From the IMG/VR virus record IMGVR_UViG_3300031884_000002, positions 62,001 to 126,000 of that record: a stretch of 64,000 bases of DNA; one strand, given 5' to 3'. A program made the position numbers and the translations under genes. Within the stretch, counting starts at the first letter, position 1. Every line of letters begins with the position of its first letter. Under the pieces are notes generated by a model. The model made no database searches and was not told the origin of the DNA. It saw nothing but the letters and a program-made list of their open reading frames with translations. Shown piece after piece: positions 14,350-62,900 of the stretch.

Positions 14350-15537
14350 TCATGATAATCCAATAGATTTAAAAAAGTTTTCCCTATGTAAAATGGAAAA
14401 TAATTCTAATTGTTTAGCATCTTTATTTTGTAAATCATAAATCGGTTGACCTTTTTCATTTTTAATTAAAACAATCTTACCATGTCCAGTATCTTCAATA
14501 GATTTCATTAAACTTCTAACTTTTTGATTATTATTGAATTGAGATTTTAGGCGTCTATTAACATCGGACCAGTTATTCTGATATCTTTCTAATAAACGCC
14601 GAATTAATTCATCGGTAGATGTATCTACAACAATCACATTATTATTACATAGATAATGCATATTACAATCTATAAGCAATGCTCCATTTAGAATAATAAG
14701 TCCTGTTTTACCAGCAATTTGCTTTCTAATTTCTCTAATCATTATAGGCTTATATAAATCTTGTATTTTTTTATTAAAAAAACAATCATTAAATATTGCT
14801 TCCTGTAAATCTAATTTTATAATTTTAAAATATTCAGTCTTATTTTTATCGGATAACATTTCCATCACGGTTTTACGCATATCCATTACTTCAATATTTT
14901 CCTTAAATGTATCGCCATATGTTAAATTATATGCAATTTTATCCATATCTATATGAGTAACTGGTAAATTAGAATACCCATCAATCAATAACTGAGTTAT
15001 ATAAGATTTACCACAACCAATGGTGCCGGTAACTCCGATAATATATTGTTGATTTATTTTAATTTCCAATAATTGCTTGGCCGATAAAGAAACATAATCC
15101 CTAACATCGCCATTGTATTTAATCAATTCTTTGGCGGCTGATGAACTAATTTTAGCATCAATCGGATTAGAAAATAAAACACAAGTATCAACTCCGTTTT
15201 CCTGTGCCACCGTTACTTCGTGTAACATTCGTTCATATTCCGTATCTTTAATATCCCGAATACCTTTAATAATAGTAACAATACCTTTGGAACGAGCATA
15301 ATCGCTAACTAATTGATTATCAGGGAGAACATCAACTTCAAACTCGGTTGATAATAAAGAAGGCAGAGCACTATAAATAAGTCCAATCCGTTCTTCAATA
15401 TTAAATGTATATTTTTTAGCAGGATTATTCGCCACTAAAACAACCACCTTGTCAAACATTTTTAGTGCTCGCTTAACAATGTTGGCGTGTCCCTCGTGAA
15501 AACAATCAAAACTTCCAGCGTAAATACAAGATTTCAT
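14350..15537 (-). CDS. coaD: bifunctional phosphopantetheine adenylyltransferase / dephospho-CoA kinase (CoaD-CoaE fusion)
   Basis: YAGSFDCFHEGH, KGIR...EYE and ISSSAAKEL, followed by a P-loop IIGVTGTIGCGKS and IDMDKIA. Confidence 0.85.
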   Translation of the reverse strand: MKSCIYAGSFDCFHEGHANIVKRALKMFDKVVVLVANNPAKKYTFNIEERIGLIYSALPSLLSTEFEVDVLPDNQLVSDYARSKGIVTIIKGIRDIKDTEYERMLHEVTVAQENGVDTCVLFSNPIDAKISSSAAKELIKYNGDVRDYVSLSAKQLLEIKINQQYIIGVTGTIGCGKSYITQLLIDGYSNLPVTHIDMDKIAYNLTYGDTFKENIEVMDMRKTVMEMLSDKNKTEYFKIIKLDLQEAIFNDCFFNKKIQDLYKPIMIREIRKQIAGKTGLIILNGALLIDCNMHYLCNNNVIVVDTSTDELIRRLLERYQNNWSDVNRRLKSQFNNNQKVRSLMKSIEDTGHGKIVLIKNEKGQPIYDLQNKDAKQLELFSILHRENFFKSIGLS

Positions 15538-15690
15538 AAATTTACAATTATTCCATTTTTACTTTTAACAAATGATATCAATGTTTCTTTGGAACCAGTC
15601 GATACAAAAGAATAAAATATAAACCAAGATTGGCGATATAATAGGTATATATCATGTACTTCATCATATGCTTTAATTTTATATTTCATA

Positions 15691-22379: not shown

Positions 22380-22838
22380 TCAAGCTTTTACATACCACGA
22401 TGGAATATTACCAGATTTCCACTTAGCAAACGTCTTATCTTTAATATAAAACGTTTGATATGCAGTAACATAATCATTGTGTTTATATTCATCTGGCATA
22501 CATTGGAAATGAGAAGTTTGTGGTAAATTAGGTAAATTTATGGCTGAATAATTATTCAATATCCATGCCAATACTGCTTGTGATTTATGTATTCTATTAT
22601 ATCGTTTAGAATATTCATTAAATATTTCTCTACAATGTTCTATCAACCAATCATAATTTTTAATAGTTTCTCTTGTCCATTTAGAACAGGGATGATTATA
22701 ATGAGTTCTTTTATATGGAGCCACATCAAATGCATTACATAACATTTGACACGATTCCATTCCCATTTTAACTATATGTTTATCACATAGTTCTTGTGCC
22801 GCAATAATCGGAGATACGTTTACCGCAAATATATTCAT
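22380..22838 (-). CDS. pyrimidine-dimer glycosylase-like phage protein
   Basis: MNIF...CDKHIVKM..E..QML, YKRTHYNHPC..W and H.S. Confidence 0.75.
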   Translation of the reverse strand: MNIFAVNVSPIIAAQELCDKHIVKMGMESCQMLCNAFDVAPYKRTHYNHPCSKWTRETIKNYDWLIEHCREIFNEYSKRYNRIHKSQAVLAWILNNYSAINLPNLPQTSHFQCMPDEYKHNDYVTAYQTFYIKDKTFAKWKSGNIPSWYVKA

Positions 22839-22932: not shown

Positions 22933-23076
22933 ATGGGAAGAAAAAAAATATACATTACAGAGTCCGATAAGATTGCCGCTGCCAGAAAATGGAGAATGAA
23001 TTATTATTGGAAAAACCAAAAAAAAGAGCAAAAACGAAATCTTAAAAACTATTATGAAAGAAAAAGAACCAACTAA
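22933..23076 (+). CDS. basic peptide MGRKK-3 (47 aa) overlapping the HNH start
   Basis: MGRKKIYITESDKIAAARKWRMNYYWKN...; immediately after TATTTATA. Confidence 0.7.
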   Translation: MGRKKIYITESDKIAAARKWRMNYYWKNQKKEQKRNLKNYYERKRTN

Positions 23077-23851
23077 TTATTATAAAAGTTGTCCTAAATG
23101 TAATAAAATAATTTATTATAAACATCCTCAAACGTTACAAAATTCAATACAACATAATTGGAATTGTAGGAAATGTGTATTATTGGAAAGACGAGGACTA
23201 TACACAGAACAAGAAGAACAATTTTTAATAGATAATTATTCTAAACTGGGAAGAGACGAATGTGCTAAACGATTAAACAGAACTACATTTTCAATAGGAG
23301 TAAAAACCAGTAAAATGGGACTTATTATGACCCCACAGCCAAAAGATCCAATAAATAACCAAATATGTGGAAGATGTAATGTAGAATTAAACAAATCACA
23401 TTTTACAAAAGATAAACGACGAATAAATAAAATAGGTATTATGTGTAAAAAATGCATGTGGAAAGATAGACAACGACCCGATAAAAAATTAAACAAAAAG
23501 AAATATGATTTTAAATATAAACACATTAAAAAGAAAAGTCCAATTTTTAAATTAAGATGTAAAGTCAAAAAACGAATAATGGCAGCAATAAAATCCTCAA
23601 AACTTAAAAAGAGACATTCGATCATAGAATTATTGGGATGTTCTATTATAGATTTCCAAAAATATTTACAATCACAATTTAACTCAGGTATGACGTGGGA
23701 AAATTATGGTTTTCGAGGATGGCATATGGATCATAAAATACCATTATCATCCGCAAAAACACAAGAGGAACTCGAAAAACTATTTCATTATACAAATATA
23801 CAACCTCTATGGTGGTATGATAATTTAAGTAAAAAAAATAAAATATTATAA
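23054..23851 (+). CDS. HNH homing endonuclease
   Basis: LLGCS...MTWENYG..GWHMDHKIPL...HYTNIQPLW..DNLSK. Confidence 0.88.
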   Translation: MKEKEPTNYYKSCPKCNKIIYYKHPQTLQNSIQHNWNCRKCVLLERRGLYTEQEEQFLIDNYSKLGRDECAKRLNRTTFSIGVKTSKMGLIMTPQPKDPINNQICGRCNVELNKSHFTKDKRRINKIGIMCKKCMWKDRQRPDKKLNKKKYDFKYKHIKKKSPIFKLRCKVKKRIMAAIKSSKLKKRHSIIELLGCSIIDFQKYLQSQFNSGMTWENYGFRGWHMDHKIPLSSAKTQEELEKLFHYTNIQPLWWYDNLSKKNKIL

Positions 23852-24229
23852 ATTATTCTTAAAATTAAGAAGTGTGCAGTGAAACCCCCAAAAATTAGTA
23901 TCTATAATTTTCATCATATTTTTAATTTCCATTGCCTCTTCACATTTAACATTCATCCATACATTCTTTTTAGAAATAGTAATATTAGTAGGGTCATACT
24001 CAAACTCTATTCGTTTACCTTCCAAGTGTTTAATAGGGGAGATATCAATGTTTTTACCATGAATGTCAGGTAGATAAATAGAAATGTGTGCGCCATGCGC
24101 CGGAAGCTGAGATTTAACAGTATTCCAATTATACAGTTGAAATAATCGTTGATAATAACGAACAATGTCGTAAGAACAAATTATTCTTACGCCTTTCTCA
24201 ATCTGTAGTTTTCCTATGGATTTAAACAC
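23846..24229 (-). CDS. 2H phosphoesterase-like protein
   Basis: Two HxS/T motifs (AHISI and FHCTL) about 70 aa apart. Confidence 0.65.
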   Translation of the reverse strand: MFKSIGKLQIEKGVRIICSYDIVRYYQRLFQLYNWNTVKSQLPAHGAHISIYLPDIHGKNIDISPIKHLEGKRIEFEYDPTNITISKKNVWMNVKCEEAMEIKNMMKIIDTNFWGFHCTLLNFKNNL

Positions 24230-24269
24230 AATCTAAGTATATCGAAGTATATTTAGAAGTCAATAAAAA

Positions 24270-24510
24270 TTGAATGATGGTTAGCCGATATTCTATAATT
24301 ATGACTGACATTTATCTCATTATTGCTAATGGAAGTGTGCTAACAACTTCTGCTCCAACCTGTCCGCATAAGGAAACCGGCACCTTTGGACTTTTAGGAT
24401 TGCTACTTCCGTGGTATTGGCGAGTAATCTCTCCCACGTTAGGTTTGGTAGTATCGAACTTCTTCTAATTGAAGGCTTTACTTCAACCAGCGTCAATCTC
24501 CATCATTCAA
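24270..24510 (-). ncRNA. rnpB: RNase P RNA, minimal (241 nt)
   Basis: P1 UUGAAUGAUGG/CCAUCAUUCAA; P2 GAUUGAC/GUCAGUC; P3 10-bp hairpin; P4 AGU[U]CGAUA/UAUCGGCU with the bulged U; P5 ending in GGAGCA; P7 AACCU/AGGUU; P15 GAAGU/ACUUC; P18 CAUUA-GCAA-UAAUG; J18/2 AGAUAAAU; AUAGAA before P4 3'; TATTTATA immediately upstream and a U-tract downstream. Confidence 0.9.
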
Positions 24511-25515
24511 CTATAAATATATCATTTTTTATAGTAAATGTCAAGTGCTTTTGTGGCAAATCCAATTGCTTCTATTTTTGACATCCAACCGGCTTCAAAT
24601 GTTGTTCCATAATCTTCAATATAATTAAATAATCTCGTATTTGAAAAGTTTAAATTATCAAAATAATCAGTTTCATTATTCCATACTCCCATAGACCATG
24701 AAGACCCTCTGGCTCTAAAATAATACCATTTTCCATCCTTCAATGTTCCTTCTATTTGAACGGGACAATAACCTTGAGGCATTTCTAATTTATAAGGATT
24801 TTGAAACTTCCATACAAACCAAGTTTTCCATCTATCTATATAATTATTCAATTTTTTCATATGTTCCACTTGATATTTCTTTTTTAATAGAACGTCCAAA
24901 TAAATATCTAATCCAATAAGTTCCATTGGAAGTTTCAACTTTATAAACTCTTGCATTTTCTATAATCCAATAAGGACCAGTACAAACAGTTCTATATTCA
25001 ATAGAATTGATACTTATTTTATTATTTTCGGCCCATTTATGAATATCGGTATTATCACCATAATAGATAACAACAACCCAAATGATACATAACACAATAA
25101 AAGATACTAGTATAAATCCAGATTTCATTTATTCATTTCCTTCTCTGGATCACGTTACCAATTCCAAAACTCACAATTTTTCATAGGAACATAATTATAA
25201 ATCATATCAAATATTAGTTTGGCATCATCTATTGCTTTTCTTTTTTTAATAGAATCTCCATAAATAATATCTTCCAATAAACTTTTCAGTTCATCTCGTT
25301 CTTGTCTCAATTCAGATATAATCCGGTCCTTTGATGGTAATTCAATTTCTTTCATATTAAGTAAATAAATATTTTAAATGCGTGAATATTTGATATGTTA
25401 AAGCAGCCATCATTATCAACATTGCCAATGAAACTATACATAACATAGGAATCAATACTAAATAAACAAAACATTTCATAATCATACTTCAACTATATAG
25501 ATTACATTCTATTTG

Positions 25516-59901: not shown

Positions 59902-62900
59902 ATAATTTCTTCAATAGTAATTTTATATTTTTTAGTCGTATTAAAAGGTAGTAATCCATAATATTTCATTTCCACAAATCCTTTTTCTCCATACCCAGAA
60001 ATTAAAGTATTAGGACTATGTACAATATCAAAATAATATAACCCCGTATAAAAAAAAGGTTCTTCAGTAGAAGGTATATTATGAGAAACTGAAGTTAGCA
60101 TAATGTCAAATGATACTGGTTTAAACACAATAGGATGTTCTATTGGTATTTCTTTATACATTGGTTCTAATTTAGATATAACTTTATCATATGGAACATA
60201 TTCTATAGTATTAACATTAGAAATAACATTTACCAAAAAATGTTTATTATCATTTCCGGTATTAGTATCGCCTATAATTCCTTTGCGTTTTATACCCAAA
60301 ATACTATTGTATTCTATACTATCGTTTATTTTTAATTCATTTATTTTCATAATATTGTCAAGTCCAGAGTATATTCCTATGAGTTACTAACCAAATCATG
60401 TATTCAGTATCAGTATCATATATCAATTTTTCCAGCCGATTGGTTTCTCCATATAATTCTTCATATTTTTTCTTGGCGTCATCAGGATTATTATATTGAA
60501 GAGGAAATCCTTTGGATATATCAAATGGAGGATATGAGTCATCTAATTTTTTCTGCATTTCGGCTCTGCCGGTTTTAGCCCAATTATATATTTTAATAAT
60601 TGCTTCTTTTTCAGATTTAAGATTATCCCATCCTATTACATTTAAAGCATCTTCGCCTTCAATATAATCAATTATACCGGCAAATAAAACATTCTCATAA
60701 ATTGTGTCAAGATCTAACCATCTATTACTTATTGACTTCTTAACCCACTTATTTCTAGGGTTAAGCCAACACCTAATTCCATATGATATATCTCGATAGA
60801 AATAAGGACATAAAATAGTATATTTATCTTGTAATTTATTCCAGAGTTTCATTTTAATCGTTTCAGTAATTCTTGTTTTAATTCTAATACTTTATTATCA
60901 TATATTCTAAATCCACCTGAATTATTACAGGCATCTTTCGCAGAATAATCTACCCATCTTGTATATAAATCTAATAATTGTTCGTTAGTTACCAATTCGT
61001 TGACTACCCGCTTTATACCATTATAACCCATGGATTTTTGGAATATTCTATCACTTTTAATCTTTTTCTGTCTTTTTAAGTTTTCTAATGCCAAATCCTT
61101 CATCACTTCAATTGGAAGTTCGTATTTTTTACATCGGTGAGGAGCATCATTATCATTTACTAAAATCCATTTAGTTTTATATTTTCCCCATCGGACATGA
61201 GTAGTTCCACATCCTTTACATTTAGGATTTTCAATATAGTGGGGATATGAATAATAATCATCAACCCACATACTATCTGCGTCCATATCGGCTATATCAC
61301 CCATTTTTTAAGTTTAACATATTTGACTCAAATGTCAATTTAATTTGACATGTAGATTAAACCTGCTATATTGAGAATATGAAATTAACCGGCAAACTTT
61401 TAGAAAAATATTTGGAGAATCCAAATGGAATGGACGAAGAAGTGAGAGAAGCATTGAAATTGCCAGATAATAGATATTATTCCATTGTTACATGGAGTAT
61501 AAATGAAGCATCAATTGGAAATGTATATGTGTCTAGGGTAGAACGAGTTGTTAAAAATAAAAAAGTTTCAAAATCAGACCAGAAAAGTAATCCTTGACTT
61601 ACAATCTTAAAACTGTATAATATGTGGCTATGTGGAAAAGAATAATAACCGATATGCCGCCTGAAAATACAAGAATTATTATATCAGATGGAGCAACCAT
61701 TGCCATTTGCCGTTATATATTGGGAAATGAGTGTATTCATTGGTTGTTTGATTCTGAATCATTTTCAGACATTAAAATAATTTATTGGATGGAATTGCCA
61801 AAACTTCCACCTGAAATTAAACAAATATCGGCGGAAATATAATTTATGTATAACCTAATTAGCACTACTAAACCAAATGCAAAAAAAGAATATGATTGTA
61901 TTTGGTGTTCTGAAAAAATCCTAAAAGGAGAACAACACGTAAAAGAAGTCGGTGAATATCAAGGAGATTTTCAAAGTAATCGCTGGCACCAAGAATGTCA
62001 TAACGCCGCTCAATTATATTTCGAGGAAAGTAATGAAAATGAGTTCACTCCACATAATAATGAACGTGGTTCAAAAAAAGAAAAAATCCTAGATGTAAAA
62101 CCAGTATATATAAATAAAATGATAGATAGATTGACTAAAATCGTATCATTTGAAATGAATCCTAATGAATCTAAAAGATATTTCAATTTAGTAGATAGAC
62201 ATAGAGCAGTTTGTAACGCATATTCATTTAAAATATTATTCTCACCAAATGGAATAGGAACCGGAGTTCAAATTATTTGTGGAACTTGTGATGTTAAATG
62301 GGATATAACCGATTATGATAGTTGGTAATTTATGAATATTGAAACCATAAAAATAAGCGATGACGTTTCAATTGAAATATGTCATGGACACTGGACCAAA
62401 ATAATATACGAAATACCAGAAGATTACGAAGACCAAAGTTGTGAGTTTCCAATTTCAATTGAAGAACTTAGAATTTTAAAAAAATATTTAAACTCCAGAA
62501 CCGATTTATGAAATTAGTATTAACATACGATATATCGGACCACTGTACTTATTCATATCCAAATCATATTCCATTTGAATATGAATCAAAAGAAAAGGCG
62601 GAATATGATTTATATGAAGAGTGGCAACGAATTGGAAGAGAATTAGTCATGTATTCCAAATGGGAAGAAAAGTGTCCCAGCACATCTTCTAAACAAGAAA
62701 AATGGAAAGCGTGGGATAAAATGAAACCCAACGTTAATTTAAATATTAAATTGGGAACAATTAAAGAATTGGACGTTAATGATTTTACAATATATCAATC
62801 TTTGTCCAATAAACCACGAGAATACAATGAGCCAAAAATCATGACCTTGGATGAATGGTTTAATTATTATAAAGAATAATATGACAGAAAAAGATACAAA

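Follow-up and report, generated by a model that had tools for sequence, protein, structure and literature searches.

The analysed window, a 64,000-nt stretch covering positions 62,001 to 126,000 of the 354-kb lake-water phage record IMGVR_UViG_3300031884_000002, contains a 290-nt gap between two minus-strand ORFs (23846-24229 and 24522-24956). The GC content forms a local peak in this gap (42% against about 28% in the surroundings). The initial annotation, made from the sequence alone, proposed that the minus strand of the gap encodes a minimal RNase P RNA, the RNA enzyme that trims tRNA precursors. The following elements were identified in this region:

A gap between genes and its RNA elements

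24539-24544 (-): -35-like hexamer TTGACA of a sigma-70-type promoter (consensus match only)
24516-24524 (-): extended -10-like element TGATATATT
24512-24519 (-): phage motif TATTTATA, overlapping the -10-like element
24268-24512 (-): whole mini RNase P RNA, about 241-245 nt from the P1 5' strand to the P1 3' strand
24500-24512 (-): P1 5' strand, forming 13 contiguous pairs with 24268-24280
24492-24498 (-): P2 5' strand GAUUGAC, pairing with 24303-24309
24465-24490 (-): P3 hairpin, 10 bp with loop UAAAGC
24452-24465 (-): CR-I-like GAAGAAGUUCGAUA, including the P4 5' strand (24460-24452, pairing with 24290-24283) with a bulged U at 24457
24448-24451 (-): P5 5' strand, pairing with 24403-24406
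24442-24446 (-): P6 pseudoknot 5' strand AAACC in J5/7, pairing with GGUUU at 24374-24378 in the P17 loop
24410-24438 (-): specificity-domain stub with P7 (24438-24434 with 24414-24410), a 3-bp hairpin (24433-24431 with 24424-24422) and the single strand GCCAAUA (24421-24415)
24400-24406 (-): P5 3' strand followed by J5/15 CAA of the invariant GCAA
24354-24399 (-): P15-P16-P17 arm (P15: 24399-24397 with 24356-24354) with the L15 strand AGGUU at 24361-24357
24332-24350 (-): extra hairpin between P15 and P18, 5 bp with a 9-nt loop
24318-24331 (-): P18, 5 bp with a GCAA tetraloop
24310-24317 (-): J18/2 (CR-IV) AGAUAAAU
24283-24302 (-): J2/4 with AUAGAA (24296-24291), then the P4 3' strand UAUCGGCU (CR-V)
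24263-24267 (-): run of five U directly after P1
24274-24468 (+): 64-aa antisense ORF, probably spurious

The observation made in the initial annotation was confirmed. All helices named there (P1, P2, P3, P4 with the bulged U, P5, P15 and P18 with the GCAA loop) were present and were checked against 24 homologues. The joining segments AGAUAAAU and AUAGAA and the U-tract after P1 were also present. The region inside P7 was indeed short, about 19 nt, and contained no CR-II or CR-III motifs. The P6 pseudoknot, P7, P16 and P17 had been missed. The ORF held there to be spurious was listed mechanically, but open frames across the homologues varied in length and frame, and the substitutions followed RNA pairing instead.

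A promoter scan upstream of P1 revealed TTGACA, a 17-nt spacer and TATATT preceded by TG, with 11 of 12 consensus matches. This arrangement predicts a transcription start at about 24509-24511, the 5' end of P1, although the start was inferred from the usual promoter spacing and not measured. The terminator scan found no hairpin-type terminator. The TATTTATA motif was not significantly enriched as a bare word in the window (36 matches against 25.8 +/- 5.7 expected), but genome-wide it stood in the sense orientation upstream of 66 of 396 crudely called genes, against 8 for its reverse complement, with the ATG following mostly 3-6 nt later. The possibility that TATTTATA is the T4 late promoter was rejected, as the T4 consensus TATAAATA is its reverse complement and was not enriched upstream of genes here.

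Conservation and covariation in the phage family

To check if the RNA is related to RNase P RNA, Rfam models were first searched against the sequence itself, a test proposed in advance for this reading. No RNase P hit was obtained at gathering thresholds, at E <= 10 on 801 nt or with RF00010 on the whole genome, and only chance snoRNA and sRNA matches appeared. This reflects the sensitivity for a short AT-rich sequence, not absence. A blastn search of the RNA against 50,697 phage records also found nothing. The single-sequence fold z-score was only -1.97.

In contrast, a covariance model (R1) built only from 24 homologues in other phage contigs, and thus without the window sequence, hit 24269-24510(-) over its full length (model positions 1-212 of 212) with 122.8 bits and E 3e-36. 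It was the only copy in the 354-kb genome. Rfam models RF00010 and RF00373 hit family members over the whole model at E 1e-8 to 1e-17, significantly but below threshold (40-63 bits against a gathering score of 100). Among these homologues were L064 (62.5 bits, E 1e-16), L133 (52 bits), L152 (42.7 bits), L144 (49.3 bits) and L024 (63.5 bits). In the RF00010 alignment of L064 only the specificity domain was missing, with about 140 S-domain model positions replaced by about 50 nt. The phage model in turn hit canonical type-A RNase P RNAs such as L050, which scored 264 bits on RF00010.

The core motifs were invariant or nearly so in the 25 sequences. In CR-I, GAGGAAGUUCG was invariant, and so were the J5/15 GCAA (25 of 25 sequences), which corresponds to the E. 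coli A248 region, and the L15 GGU. The canonical J18/2 AGAUNAAU was conserved as AGAU[A/G]AAU in all 25 sequences, with seven of the eight positions invariant, and aligned to AGAugAAU of RF00010. The J2/4 ACAGAA was kept with small variants (AUAGAA in the window, ACAAAA in some members); three A positions of the AUAGAA block were invariant, two more positions were nearly so and the GGCUA that follows was invariant. The homologues of the window's subclade have GNRA loops (GAAA, GUAA, GCAA) at the P18 position, and the extra hairpin is present only in this subclade. DNA contigs from four sequencing runs, two of which contributed no sequence here, showed a single population variant, 24344 C>T on the plus strand, located in the loop of the extra hairpin.

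The absence of compensatory changes had been named beforehand as grounds for rejecting the identification, but such changes were abundant. In the wider alignment 97.1% of cells paired against 69.2% in shuffles, the covariation score was 0.589 against 0.154, with 0 of 500 shuffles as high, slid controls paired at 24-45%, and 21 of 25 modelled pairs showed compensatory changes. P2 was 95% paired, with 7 of 7 pairs compensatory (slid controls 0.21-0.41). The base of P3 was 98% paired, with compensatory changes, and was recovered by RNAalifold. P5 was 100% paired with 3 of 4 pairs compensatory, whereas P15, P16 and P17 were 100%, 95% and 88% paired, all with compensatory changes. P7 was 77% paired on fixed columns, with 4 of 5 pairs compensatory. 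P1, P2, P6 and P7 were not part of model R1 and were counted with separate scripts. Cognate P1 helices averaged 7.9 bp across the family against 4.35 +/- 1.5 for non-cognate flanks. For P6, all 25 sequences had 4-8 Watson-Crick pairs in more than 10 different sequence versions (cognate mean 5.5 against non-cognate 3.2 +/- 0.9).

P4, formed by CR-I and CR-V, was 100% paired, with the bulged U at the same place and five pairs below and three above it; 4 of 8 pairs covaried, and 6 of 8 in the wider alignment. However, the two pairs next to the bulge, equivalent to E. coli A67-U and G68-C, were G-C and U-G throughout the family. Those positions are near-universal in cellular RNase P, and the effect of the change on metal binding is not known. 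The helices P1-P7 and P15-P17 of bacterial type-A RNase P RNA were supported, whereas the specificity domain was replaced by a stub of roughly 25 nt.

Genomic context, distribution and protein partner

The IMG/VR record was rated 100% complete by CheckV, and the genome encodes a tail sheath, RIIA, an SbcC-like nuclease subunit, a baseplate wedge subunit and a virion structural protein. A search for tRNA clusters, suggested in the initial annotation, revealed about 24 tRNA genes plus a tmRNA. Of 25 tRNA genes, 20 encode CCA and 20 have T at -1, the features read by a type-A enzyme; the contact between L15 GGU and the tRNA 3'-CCA was not assayed. In this phage the RNA gene is a stand-alone unit far from the tRNA genes, but 18 of 41 family loci (44%) had a tRNA gene within 100 nt.

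The family comprised more than 40 members in phages with 36-63% local GC, with one copy per genome. Unannotated members sit in cultured phages, Stenotrophomonas phage DLP6 (KU682439.2, about 105773-106019) and a Microbacterium foliorum phage. Most pattern hits in all collections were chance matches and were filtered out with the covariance model. Only 1 of 80 pattern hits returned from cellular genomes was a member, on a 3-kb MAG contig. Relatives of the two flanking proteins were found in 5 viral contigs, none of which had the RNA next to them, so the RNA is not linked to those genes. A Pfam search of nine neighbouring ORFs found only a pyrimidine dimer glycosylase and no candidate cofactor.

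The suggestion in the initial annotation that the RNA uses host RnpA or a phage substitute fits the data. No rnpA was found in this phage with the Pfam model (PF00825), a phage RnpA protein query, a profile of phage RnpA homologues or an RNR-motif scan (best E-value 0.18), so the host protein would be needed, and the observations do not settle whether a partner is available. Two records of related huge phages, of 476 kb and 483 kb, carry both the mini-RNA and a 99-aa RnpA homologue with an intact RNR motif, which sits beside ClpP and not in the bacterial rpmH/yidC context.

Interpretation and relation to known RNase P RNAs

The interpretation given in the initial annotation was largely supported. 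Transitive homology and covariation establish the element as an RNase P RNA that descends from the bacterial type-A ribozyme, keeps the whole catalytic domain and has lost nearly all of the specificity domain. The analysis demonstrated the homology to type-A RNase P RNA, the conservation of helices by compensatory change, the invariant core motifs, the membership in a phage-specific family and the physical linkage of that family to tRNA genes. The remainder of the model was deduced and is held with good but not full confidence. In this view, the roughly 240-nt RNA is transcribed from its own promoter, consisting of the overlapping sigma-70-type element and the TATTTATA motif, folds into the P1-P4 core, binds the host RnpA, as this phage encodes none, and cuts the 5' leaders from the phage's own tRNA and tmRNA precursors. 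It would hold the 3'-CCA with the L15 GGU and read position -1 with J5/15. Ribozyme activity was not assayed and no RNA-sequencing run was listed, so expression and the RNA ends are unverified. The lack of an Rfam hit for the window sequence itself, the altered P4 pairs, the absence of rnpA and of a hairpin terminator, the distance of the gene from the tRNA genes in this phage and the apparent lack of pre-tRNA processing by the camelpox virus RNA also speak against this view. Without the T-loop-reading domain the RNA probably depends more on the protein and on the CCA contact, and it may accept a wider range of substrates. The likely benefit to the phage would be tRNA-processing capacity extra to, or independent of, the host's during infection.

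The proposal that the RNA is expressed late in infection was only weakly supported. The TATTTATA motif precedes a baseplate wedge gene and a virion structural gene, but it also precedes other kinds of gene and is overlapped by the near-consensus sigma-70-type promoter.

Other explanations were considered less likely. The RNA could be a catalytically dead decoy that soaks up host RnpA or pre-tRNAs, shutting down host tRNA maturation or redirecting the protein. [quoted passage not shown] However, a decoy would not need the invariant L15 GGU, the J5/15 GCAA, the bulged U geometry of P4 or the P6 pseudoknot, yet all are kept under compensatory evolution. Moreover, the phage itself needs RNase P for its 24 tRNAs, family genes are embedded in tRNA arrays, and some relatives encode their own RnpA together with the RNA, which looks like a holoenzyme. 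This reading was regarded as unlikely.

More doubtful still is an active ribozyme whose main substrates are not tRNAs but host or phage mRNAs, or other structured RNAs, cut at sites mimicking an acceptor stem with a CCA end. The loss of the S-domain, which gives tRNA specificity in cellular enzymes, the distance of the gene from the tRNA genes in this phage and the cleavage of several non-tRNA substrates by bacterial RNase P (PMC11143913) are in line with it, whereas the proximity of family members to tRNA genes and the CCA and U(-1) of the phage tRNA genes speak against it, and no candidate non-tRNA target was identified. A decaying remnant of a captured host rnpB is very improbable. The lost S-domain, the lack of an Rfam hit for the window sequence and the lack of expression evidence could suggest it, but members from diverse phages share the same architecture and invariant core, do not show frequent helix-breaking changes, occur as one copy per genome, and the gene studied here has a near-consensus promoter.

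A broader possibility, put forward only tentatively, is that many tRNA-rich phages, from 160-kb T4-like phages to phages over 600 kb, carry their own orthogonal RNase P with a roughly 200-nt RNA, a reprogrammed P4 and no T-loop reader, accompanied in the largest phages by a phage RnpA. Such a system would take over or replace host tRNA 5' processing, for example by preferring phage precursors or escaping host measures aimed at RNase P, rather than merely adding capacity. It would be the first virus-encoded active RNase P and the smallest natural bacterial-type RNase P RNA.

RNase P RNA is regarded as a housekeeping ribozyme of cells and organelles. No mention of phage-encoded RNase P RNA was found in full-text literature searches, reviews and RNase P annotation papers, and Rfam 15 has no family that detects the window sequence. 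A phage-borne, naturally minimised bacterial-type version would add RNA-based tRNA processing to the translation-related functions carried by large phages. It is a natural experiment showing how little of the ribozyme is needed once the specificity domain is gone, and would provide a compact scaffold of about 200 nt for structural and engineering work. The family also explains unannotated gaps in the tRNA arrays of sequenced phages, and its presence in cultured phages makes it directly testable.

The closest known system is bacterial type-A RNase P RNA (RF00010; E. coli M1 RNA), with which the phage RNA shares the topology of P1-P2-P3, P4 with a bulged U, P5, the P6 pseudoknot (L17 pairing with J5/7, the type-A hallmark), P15-P16-P17 and, in the window's subclade, P18 with a GNRA loop, as well as the CR-I, CR-IV and CR-V blocks, J5/15 GCAA and L15 GGU. 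It differs in its length (about 200-250 nt instead of about 350-400 nt), in the P4 pairs next to the bulge, in its scores of 40-63 bits, or nothing, against the gathering score, in being encoded by phages and in the replacement of P8-P14 with CR-II and CR-III, which read the tRNA T-loop, by P7, a tiny hairpin and a conserved CGUUAnUACC strand. Constructs retaining only the C-domain of E. coli RNase P RNA cleave substrates with reduced efficiency (PMC5839562). Those are laboratory truncations, whereas the phage RNAs are natural, keep a small conserved stub inside P7 and have evolved as a family.

The archaeal type-T RNase P RNA of Pyrobaculum and relatives (RF02357) is also a natural RNA of about 200 nt that keeps the catalytic domain with almost no specificity domain, and was reported to be active (Lai et al. 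2010). It works with archaeal proteins, has no type-A P6 or L15 arrangement and arose independently; no direct comparison was made beyond Rfam's clan competition. The camelpox virus RNA, the only other viral RNase P-like RNA found mentioned, reportedly lacks a specificity domain. It derives from eukaryotic H1 RNA, appears not to process pre-tRNA in vitro and reduces host RNase P activity by only roughly 20% (PMC3001073). It is a single lineage with no known association with tRNA genes, whereas the phage family derives from bacterial type A and keeps every core motif. The reduced mitochondrial RNase P RNAs of yeasts are likewise encoded next to tRNA genes in a small genome, but they lose much of the catalytic domain as well and rely on a large protein, whereas the phage RNAs keep a complete bacterial catalytic domain.

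The RNA gene and its genome

The window region 24230-24521 is a 290-nt gap between two minus-strand ORFs, 23846-24229 and 24522-24956. Its GC content peaks at 42.5% in a region that is otherwise about 28%. Reading of the minus strand showed that the observation made in the initial annotation held, as every element listed there was present:

24512-24500 with 24280-24268, minus strand: a 13-bp closing helix
minus strand: GAAGAAGUUCGAUA, which pairs with UAUCGGCU around a bulged U
minus strand: the segments AGAUAAAU and AUAGAA
minus strand: a hairpin with a GCAA loop

On its own, the sequence was not compelling. The minimum-free-energy fold was only 2 sd better than that of shuffled sequences. 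A search with the Rfam RNase P models, which had been proposed in advance as a way to check the assignment, returned no RNase P hit for this sequence at gathering thresholds, at E <= 10 on 801 nt, or when RF00010 was run over the whole genome.

The IMG/VR virus record is 353,772 bp long (the window corresponds to bases 62001-126000), has 30% GC and is rated complete by CheckV. It encodes a tail sheath, RIIA, an SbcC-like nuclease subunit, an NAD-dependent ligase, a baseplate wedge subunit and a virion structural protein, and is therefore a large myovirus-type phage. It comes from lake water, and at least 17 DNA runs contain the stretch completely. The existence of tRNA genes elsewhere in the genome had also been named as a point to examine, and ARAGORN revealed 24 tRNA genes, a tmRNA and an amber-suppressor tRNA, most of them located at the two ends of the record and none in the window. 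The amber-suppressor tRNA (anticodon CUA) and the tmRNA lie outside the window (genome positions 131456-131530 and 15248-15637). TAG ends only 12 of 254 long ORFs, so TAG may be partly recoded. In the neighborhood of the RNA gene, a DenV-like pyrimidine dimer DNA glycosylase (PF03013, E 1e-8) is encoded at 22380-22838 on the minus strand. Next to it, at 23054-23851 on the plus strand, lies a lone 265-aa ORF rich in Cys and Lys, with no Pfam match, sitting among minus-strand genes.

Homologues and conserved structure

To identify relatives of the RNA, synteny, blastn and motif-based searches were performed. Synteny gave no homologues and blastn against deposited phages gave nothing, whereas degenerate DNA patterns built on the RNase P-like motifs did find relatives in viral contigs. 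Filtering resulted in 24 distinct homologues of 190-300 nt, which align with the window RNA over its whole length (alignment A2). Their local GC ranges from 36% to 59% and the contigs range from 20 to 476 kb. Invariant columns include GAGGAAGUUC of CR-I, GCAA, the GGU of GGU.G..GC, GGCUA, seven of the eight AGAUAAAU positions and three of the J2/4 adenosines. A covariance model built from the 24 homologues without the window sequence (model R1) hit window 24269-24510 on the minus strand at 122.8 bits, E 3e-36, covering all 212 model positions, and this was the only copy in the genome.

More members were found elsewhere. Among metagenome contigs, 15 of the first 80 pattern hits belonged to the family, and further members were detected in a 483-kb phage record and in a 634.8-kb uncultured phage (LR745206.1, 502060-502279). 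In two cultured phages, the RNA lies in unannotated gaps of tRNA arrays, namely in Stenotrophomonas phage DLP6 (122.9 bits; locus L296:2459-2705, KU682439.2 about 105773-106019) and in a 192-kb Microbacterium foliorum phage (71.2 bits; locus L297:2384-2606). In one representative genome for each of 185,579 prokaryotic species, the same pattern gave 115 stretches, and among the 80 of these that were examined only one was a family member. This sequence (L186:315-539, minus strand) is located on a 3-kb contig with 13 tRNA genes binned to a Candidatus Roizmanbacteria MAG; the contig is probably a mis-binned phage fragment. On present evidence, the family belongs to phages.

The presence or absence of compensatory changes among homologues had been set out beforehand as a criterion for the RNase P assignment, and such changes were abundant. 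RNAalifold on A2 recovered P3, P4 with its bulged U, P5, P15, P16 and P17, with compensatory changes in 16 of its 24 pairs. In the model-based alignment of 40 distinct sequences, 97.1% of cells formed standard pairs against 69.2% in shuffles, the covariation score was 0.589 against 0.154 and none of 500 shuffles reached any observed measure. Sliding the 3' partners by 1-3 columns dropped the pairing to 24-45%. Counts on columns anchored by invariant motifs gave the paired fractions listed below, with compensatory changes in most pairs.

Paired fraction of cells for each helix, counted on columns anchored by invariant motifs
P2: 95%
P3: 98%
P4: 100%
P5: 100%
P15: 100%
P16: 95%
P17: 88%

The inner pairs of P4 illustrate the covariation, as they read AUA/UAU in the window, and CCG/CGG, AGA/UCU, CAG/CUG, GGA/UCC and CGA/UCG in others. 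Two further helices were supported by a register-free test of cognate against non-cognate strands. The P6 pseudoknot between J5/7 and the P17 loop, which was not listed in the initial annotation, had 4-8 Watson-Crick pairs in all 25 sequences, in more than ten versions (AAACC/GGUUU in the window; CAGCU/AGCUG, UCCAAG/CUUGGA and GCGGAAA/UUUCCGC elsewhere), with a cognate mean of 5.5 against 3.2 +/- 0.9. For P1, the cognate mean was 7.9 against 4.35 +/- 1.5. P6 together with P15-P17 is the hallmark of bacterial type-A architecture.

Inside P5 there is only a 5-bp P7, a 3-bp hairpin and a conserved single strand (CGUUAnUACC in the family, GCCAAUACC in the window), and the specificity domain with CR-II and CR-III is absent. 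P18 with a GNRA loop and an extra hairpin before it occur only in the window's subclade. In DNA contigs from one lake run, the only variant across the stretch was 24344 C>T on the plus strand (G169A in the RNA), which is located in the loop of this extra hairpin and does not affect any pair. Many members of A2 (for example, loci L010, L015, L032 and L149) share a conserved AGAGAA before P2 and AAGCUCA after P4. Some also have a P17 loop GGUGAGC that could pair with GCUCA, but the correlation was not strict and was left unexplained.

Relationship to RNase P, tRNA genes and RnpA

The link to RNase P was supported in both directions. Rfam RNase P models hit several family members over the entire model at significant E-values, although well below the gathering score of 100 bits.

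Hits of Rfam RNase P models to members of the phage family (locus, model, bits, E-value)
L064: RF00010, 62.5 bits, 1e-16
L133: RF00010, 52 bits, 4e-13
L152: RF00010, 42.7 bits, 6e-10
L144: RF00373 (archaeal), 49.3 bits, 7.5e-11

The L064 alignment matches P1, P2, P3, CR-I, P5, GCAA, P15-P17, P18, CR-IV and CR-V, and skips about 140 S-domain positions. Conversely, R1 hit bona fide type-A RNAs present in the analysed loci (L020, L021, L018, L037 and L050), with the S-domain treated as an insertion; L050 scores 264 bits on RF00010. The window RNA is therefore a divergent, AT-rich member of a family that is homologous to type-A RNase P RNA. One systematic difference matters. The two P4 pairs next to the bulged U are G-C and U-G in the mini family, and A-U and G-C in the canonical sequences (pairs 71-604 and 72-603 of the alignment). 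The helix geometry of five pairs, a bulged U and three pairs is kept, however, two nucleotides that are near-universal in cellular RNase P (A67 and G68 in E. coli numbering) are replaced.

Other kinds of phage-borne RNase P RNA were also encountered at the examined loci:

L039:2869-3272: full-length type A (196 bits), inside a tRNA array of a 152-kb contig
L024:676-885, minus strand: a roughly 207-nt form with the canonical GAGGAAAGUCCGG
L034:4914-5219, minus strand: a roughly 306-nt form
L048:947-1112, minus strand: apparently only a 3' half, with an ORF just upstream that has the appearance of an HNH endonuclease, judged from the sequence

Of 41 family loci, 18 have a tRNA gene within 100 nt and 24 have one within 1 kb, and several RNAs start directly after a tRNA 3' end. 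In this phage, the gene stands alone. The phage tRNA genes (genome positions 486-42502 and 336333-352679, outside the window) mostly encode 3'-CCA (20 of 25) and have T at -1 (20 of 25), often within a TTAAT leader. A type-A enzyme reads those features with the L15 GGU and with J5/15.

No rnpA was found in this genome using the Pfam model, a phage RnpA query or a phage RnpA profile. Among five family-bearing records, the 476-kb one encodes a 99-aa protein that passes PF00825 at 50 bits, has the RNR motif AVDRNRIKRLMKE and matches solved RNase P proteins. It lies beside ClpP, a protease gene, rather than in the bacterial rpmH/yidC neighborhood. This RnpA homologue is encoded by huge phages (L167:1501-1797, minus strand, equivalent to G001:C1:440379-440669; also loci L176-L179). 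Its relatives occur in other huge-phage contigs, and the 483-kb record has both the protein and the RNA. In the 476-kb and 483-kb records, the mini RNase P RNA is located 85 kb or more away from the protein gene.

Expression signals and interpretation

A near-consensus sigma-70-type promoter was identified directly upstream of the RNA (TTGACA, 17 nt, TG-n-TATATT, 11 of 12 matches), and it predicts a start at about 24509-24511, the first bases of P1. The TATTTATA pointed out in the initial annotation (24519-24512) overlaps this promoter and is a genuine phage motif (fuller form TTATATTTATA), strand-specific and found upstream of about 66-75 genes in the whole genome, with 75 sites listed. It stands in sense orientation within 60 nt upstream of 66 of 396 crudely called genes, against 8 for its reverse complement. 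The latter, the T4 late consensus TATAAATA, is not enriched. The ATG usually follows 3-6 nt after the motif, most often exactly 4 nt, which suggests a phage promoter that gives leaderless or near-leaderless mRNAs. The motif precedes a baseplate wedge gene and a virion structural gene, but also a transposase-like gene and other genes. The late expression proposed in the initial annotation is plausible but not shown; a transcript had been named as evidence to look for, but no RNA run was listed. Five U follow P1 and no hairpin terminator was found. A second sigma-70-like promoter (TTGACT, 16 nt, TATACT; 24236-24263, minus strand) lies directly after the RNA gene and could serve the downstream ORF 23846-24229.

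The interpretation of the locus as a gene for a phage RNase P RNA was largely supported. The best-supported reading is an active RNase P RNA subunit that uses host RnpA to mature phage tRNA and tmRNA precursors. In this reading, the homology, the architecture, the conservation and the linkage to tRNA genes were demonstrated by the analysis, whereas transcription, protein binding and cleavage, which was not assayed, are inferred. The alternative possibility that the RNA serves as a decoy is weakened by the conservation of substrate-contacting elements, by the phage's own need for RNase P and by the presence of RnpA as well in some relatives. A pseudogene is excluded in practice by the compensatory evolution seen across more than 40 members, whereas a retargeted nuclease cannot be excluded.

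No description of phage-encoded RNase P RNA was found in full-text literature searches, which did not cover most subscription journals, so that a prior description elsewhere cannot be ruled out, and it is not mentioned in a 2024 review of RNase P, in RNase P annotation papers or in jumbo-phage reviews. A precedent for cleavage by a catalytic domain alone was reported in PMC5839562. The archaeal type-T RNAs are a natural example. The only viral precedent found was the camelpox RNase P-like RNA (PMC3001073). The phage RNA is considered to represent a new structural class of the already known bacterial-type RNase P RNA, in a new biological setting.
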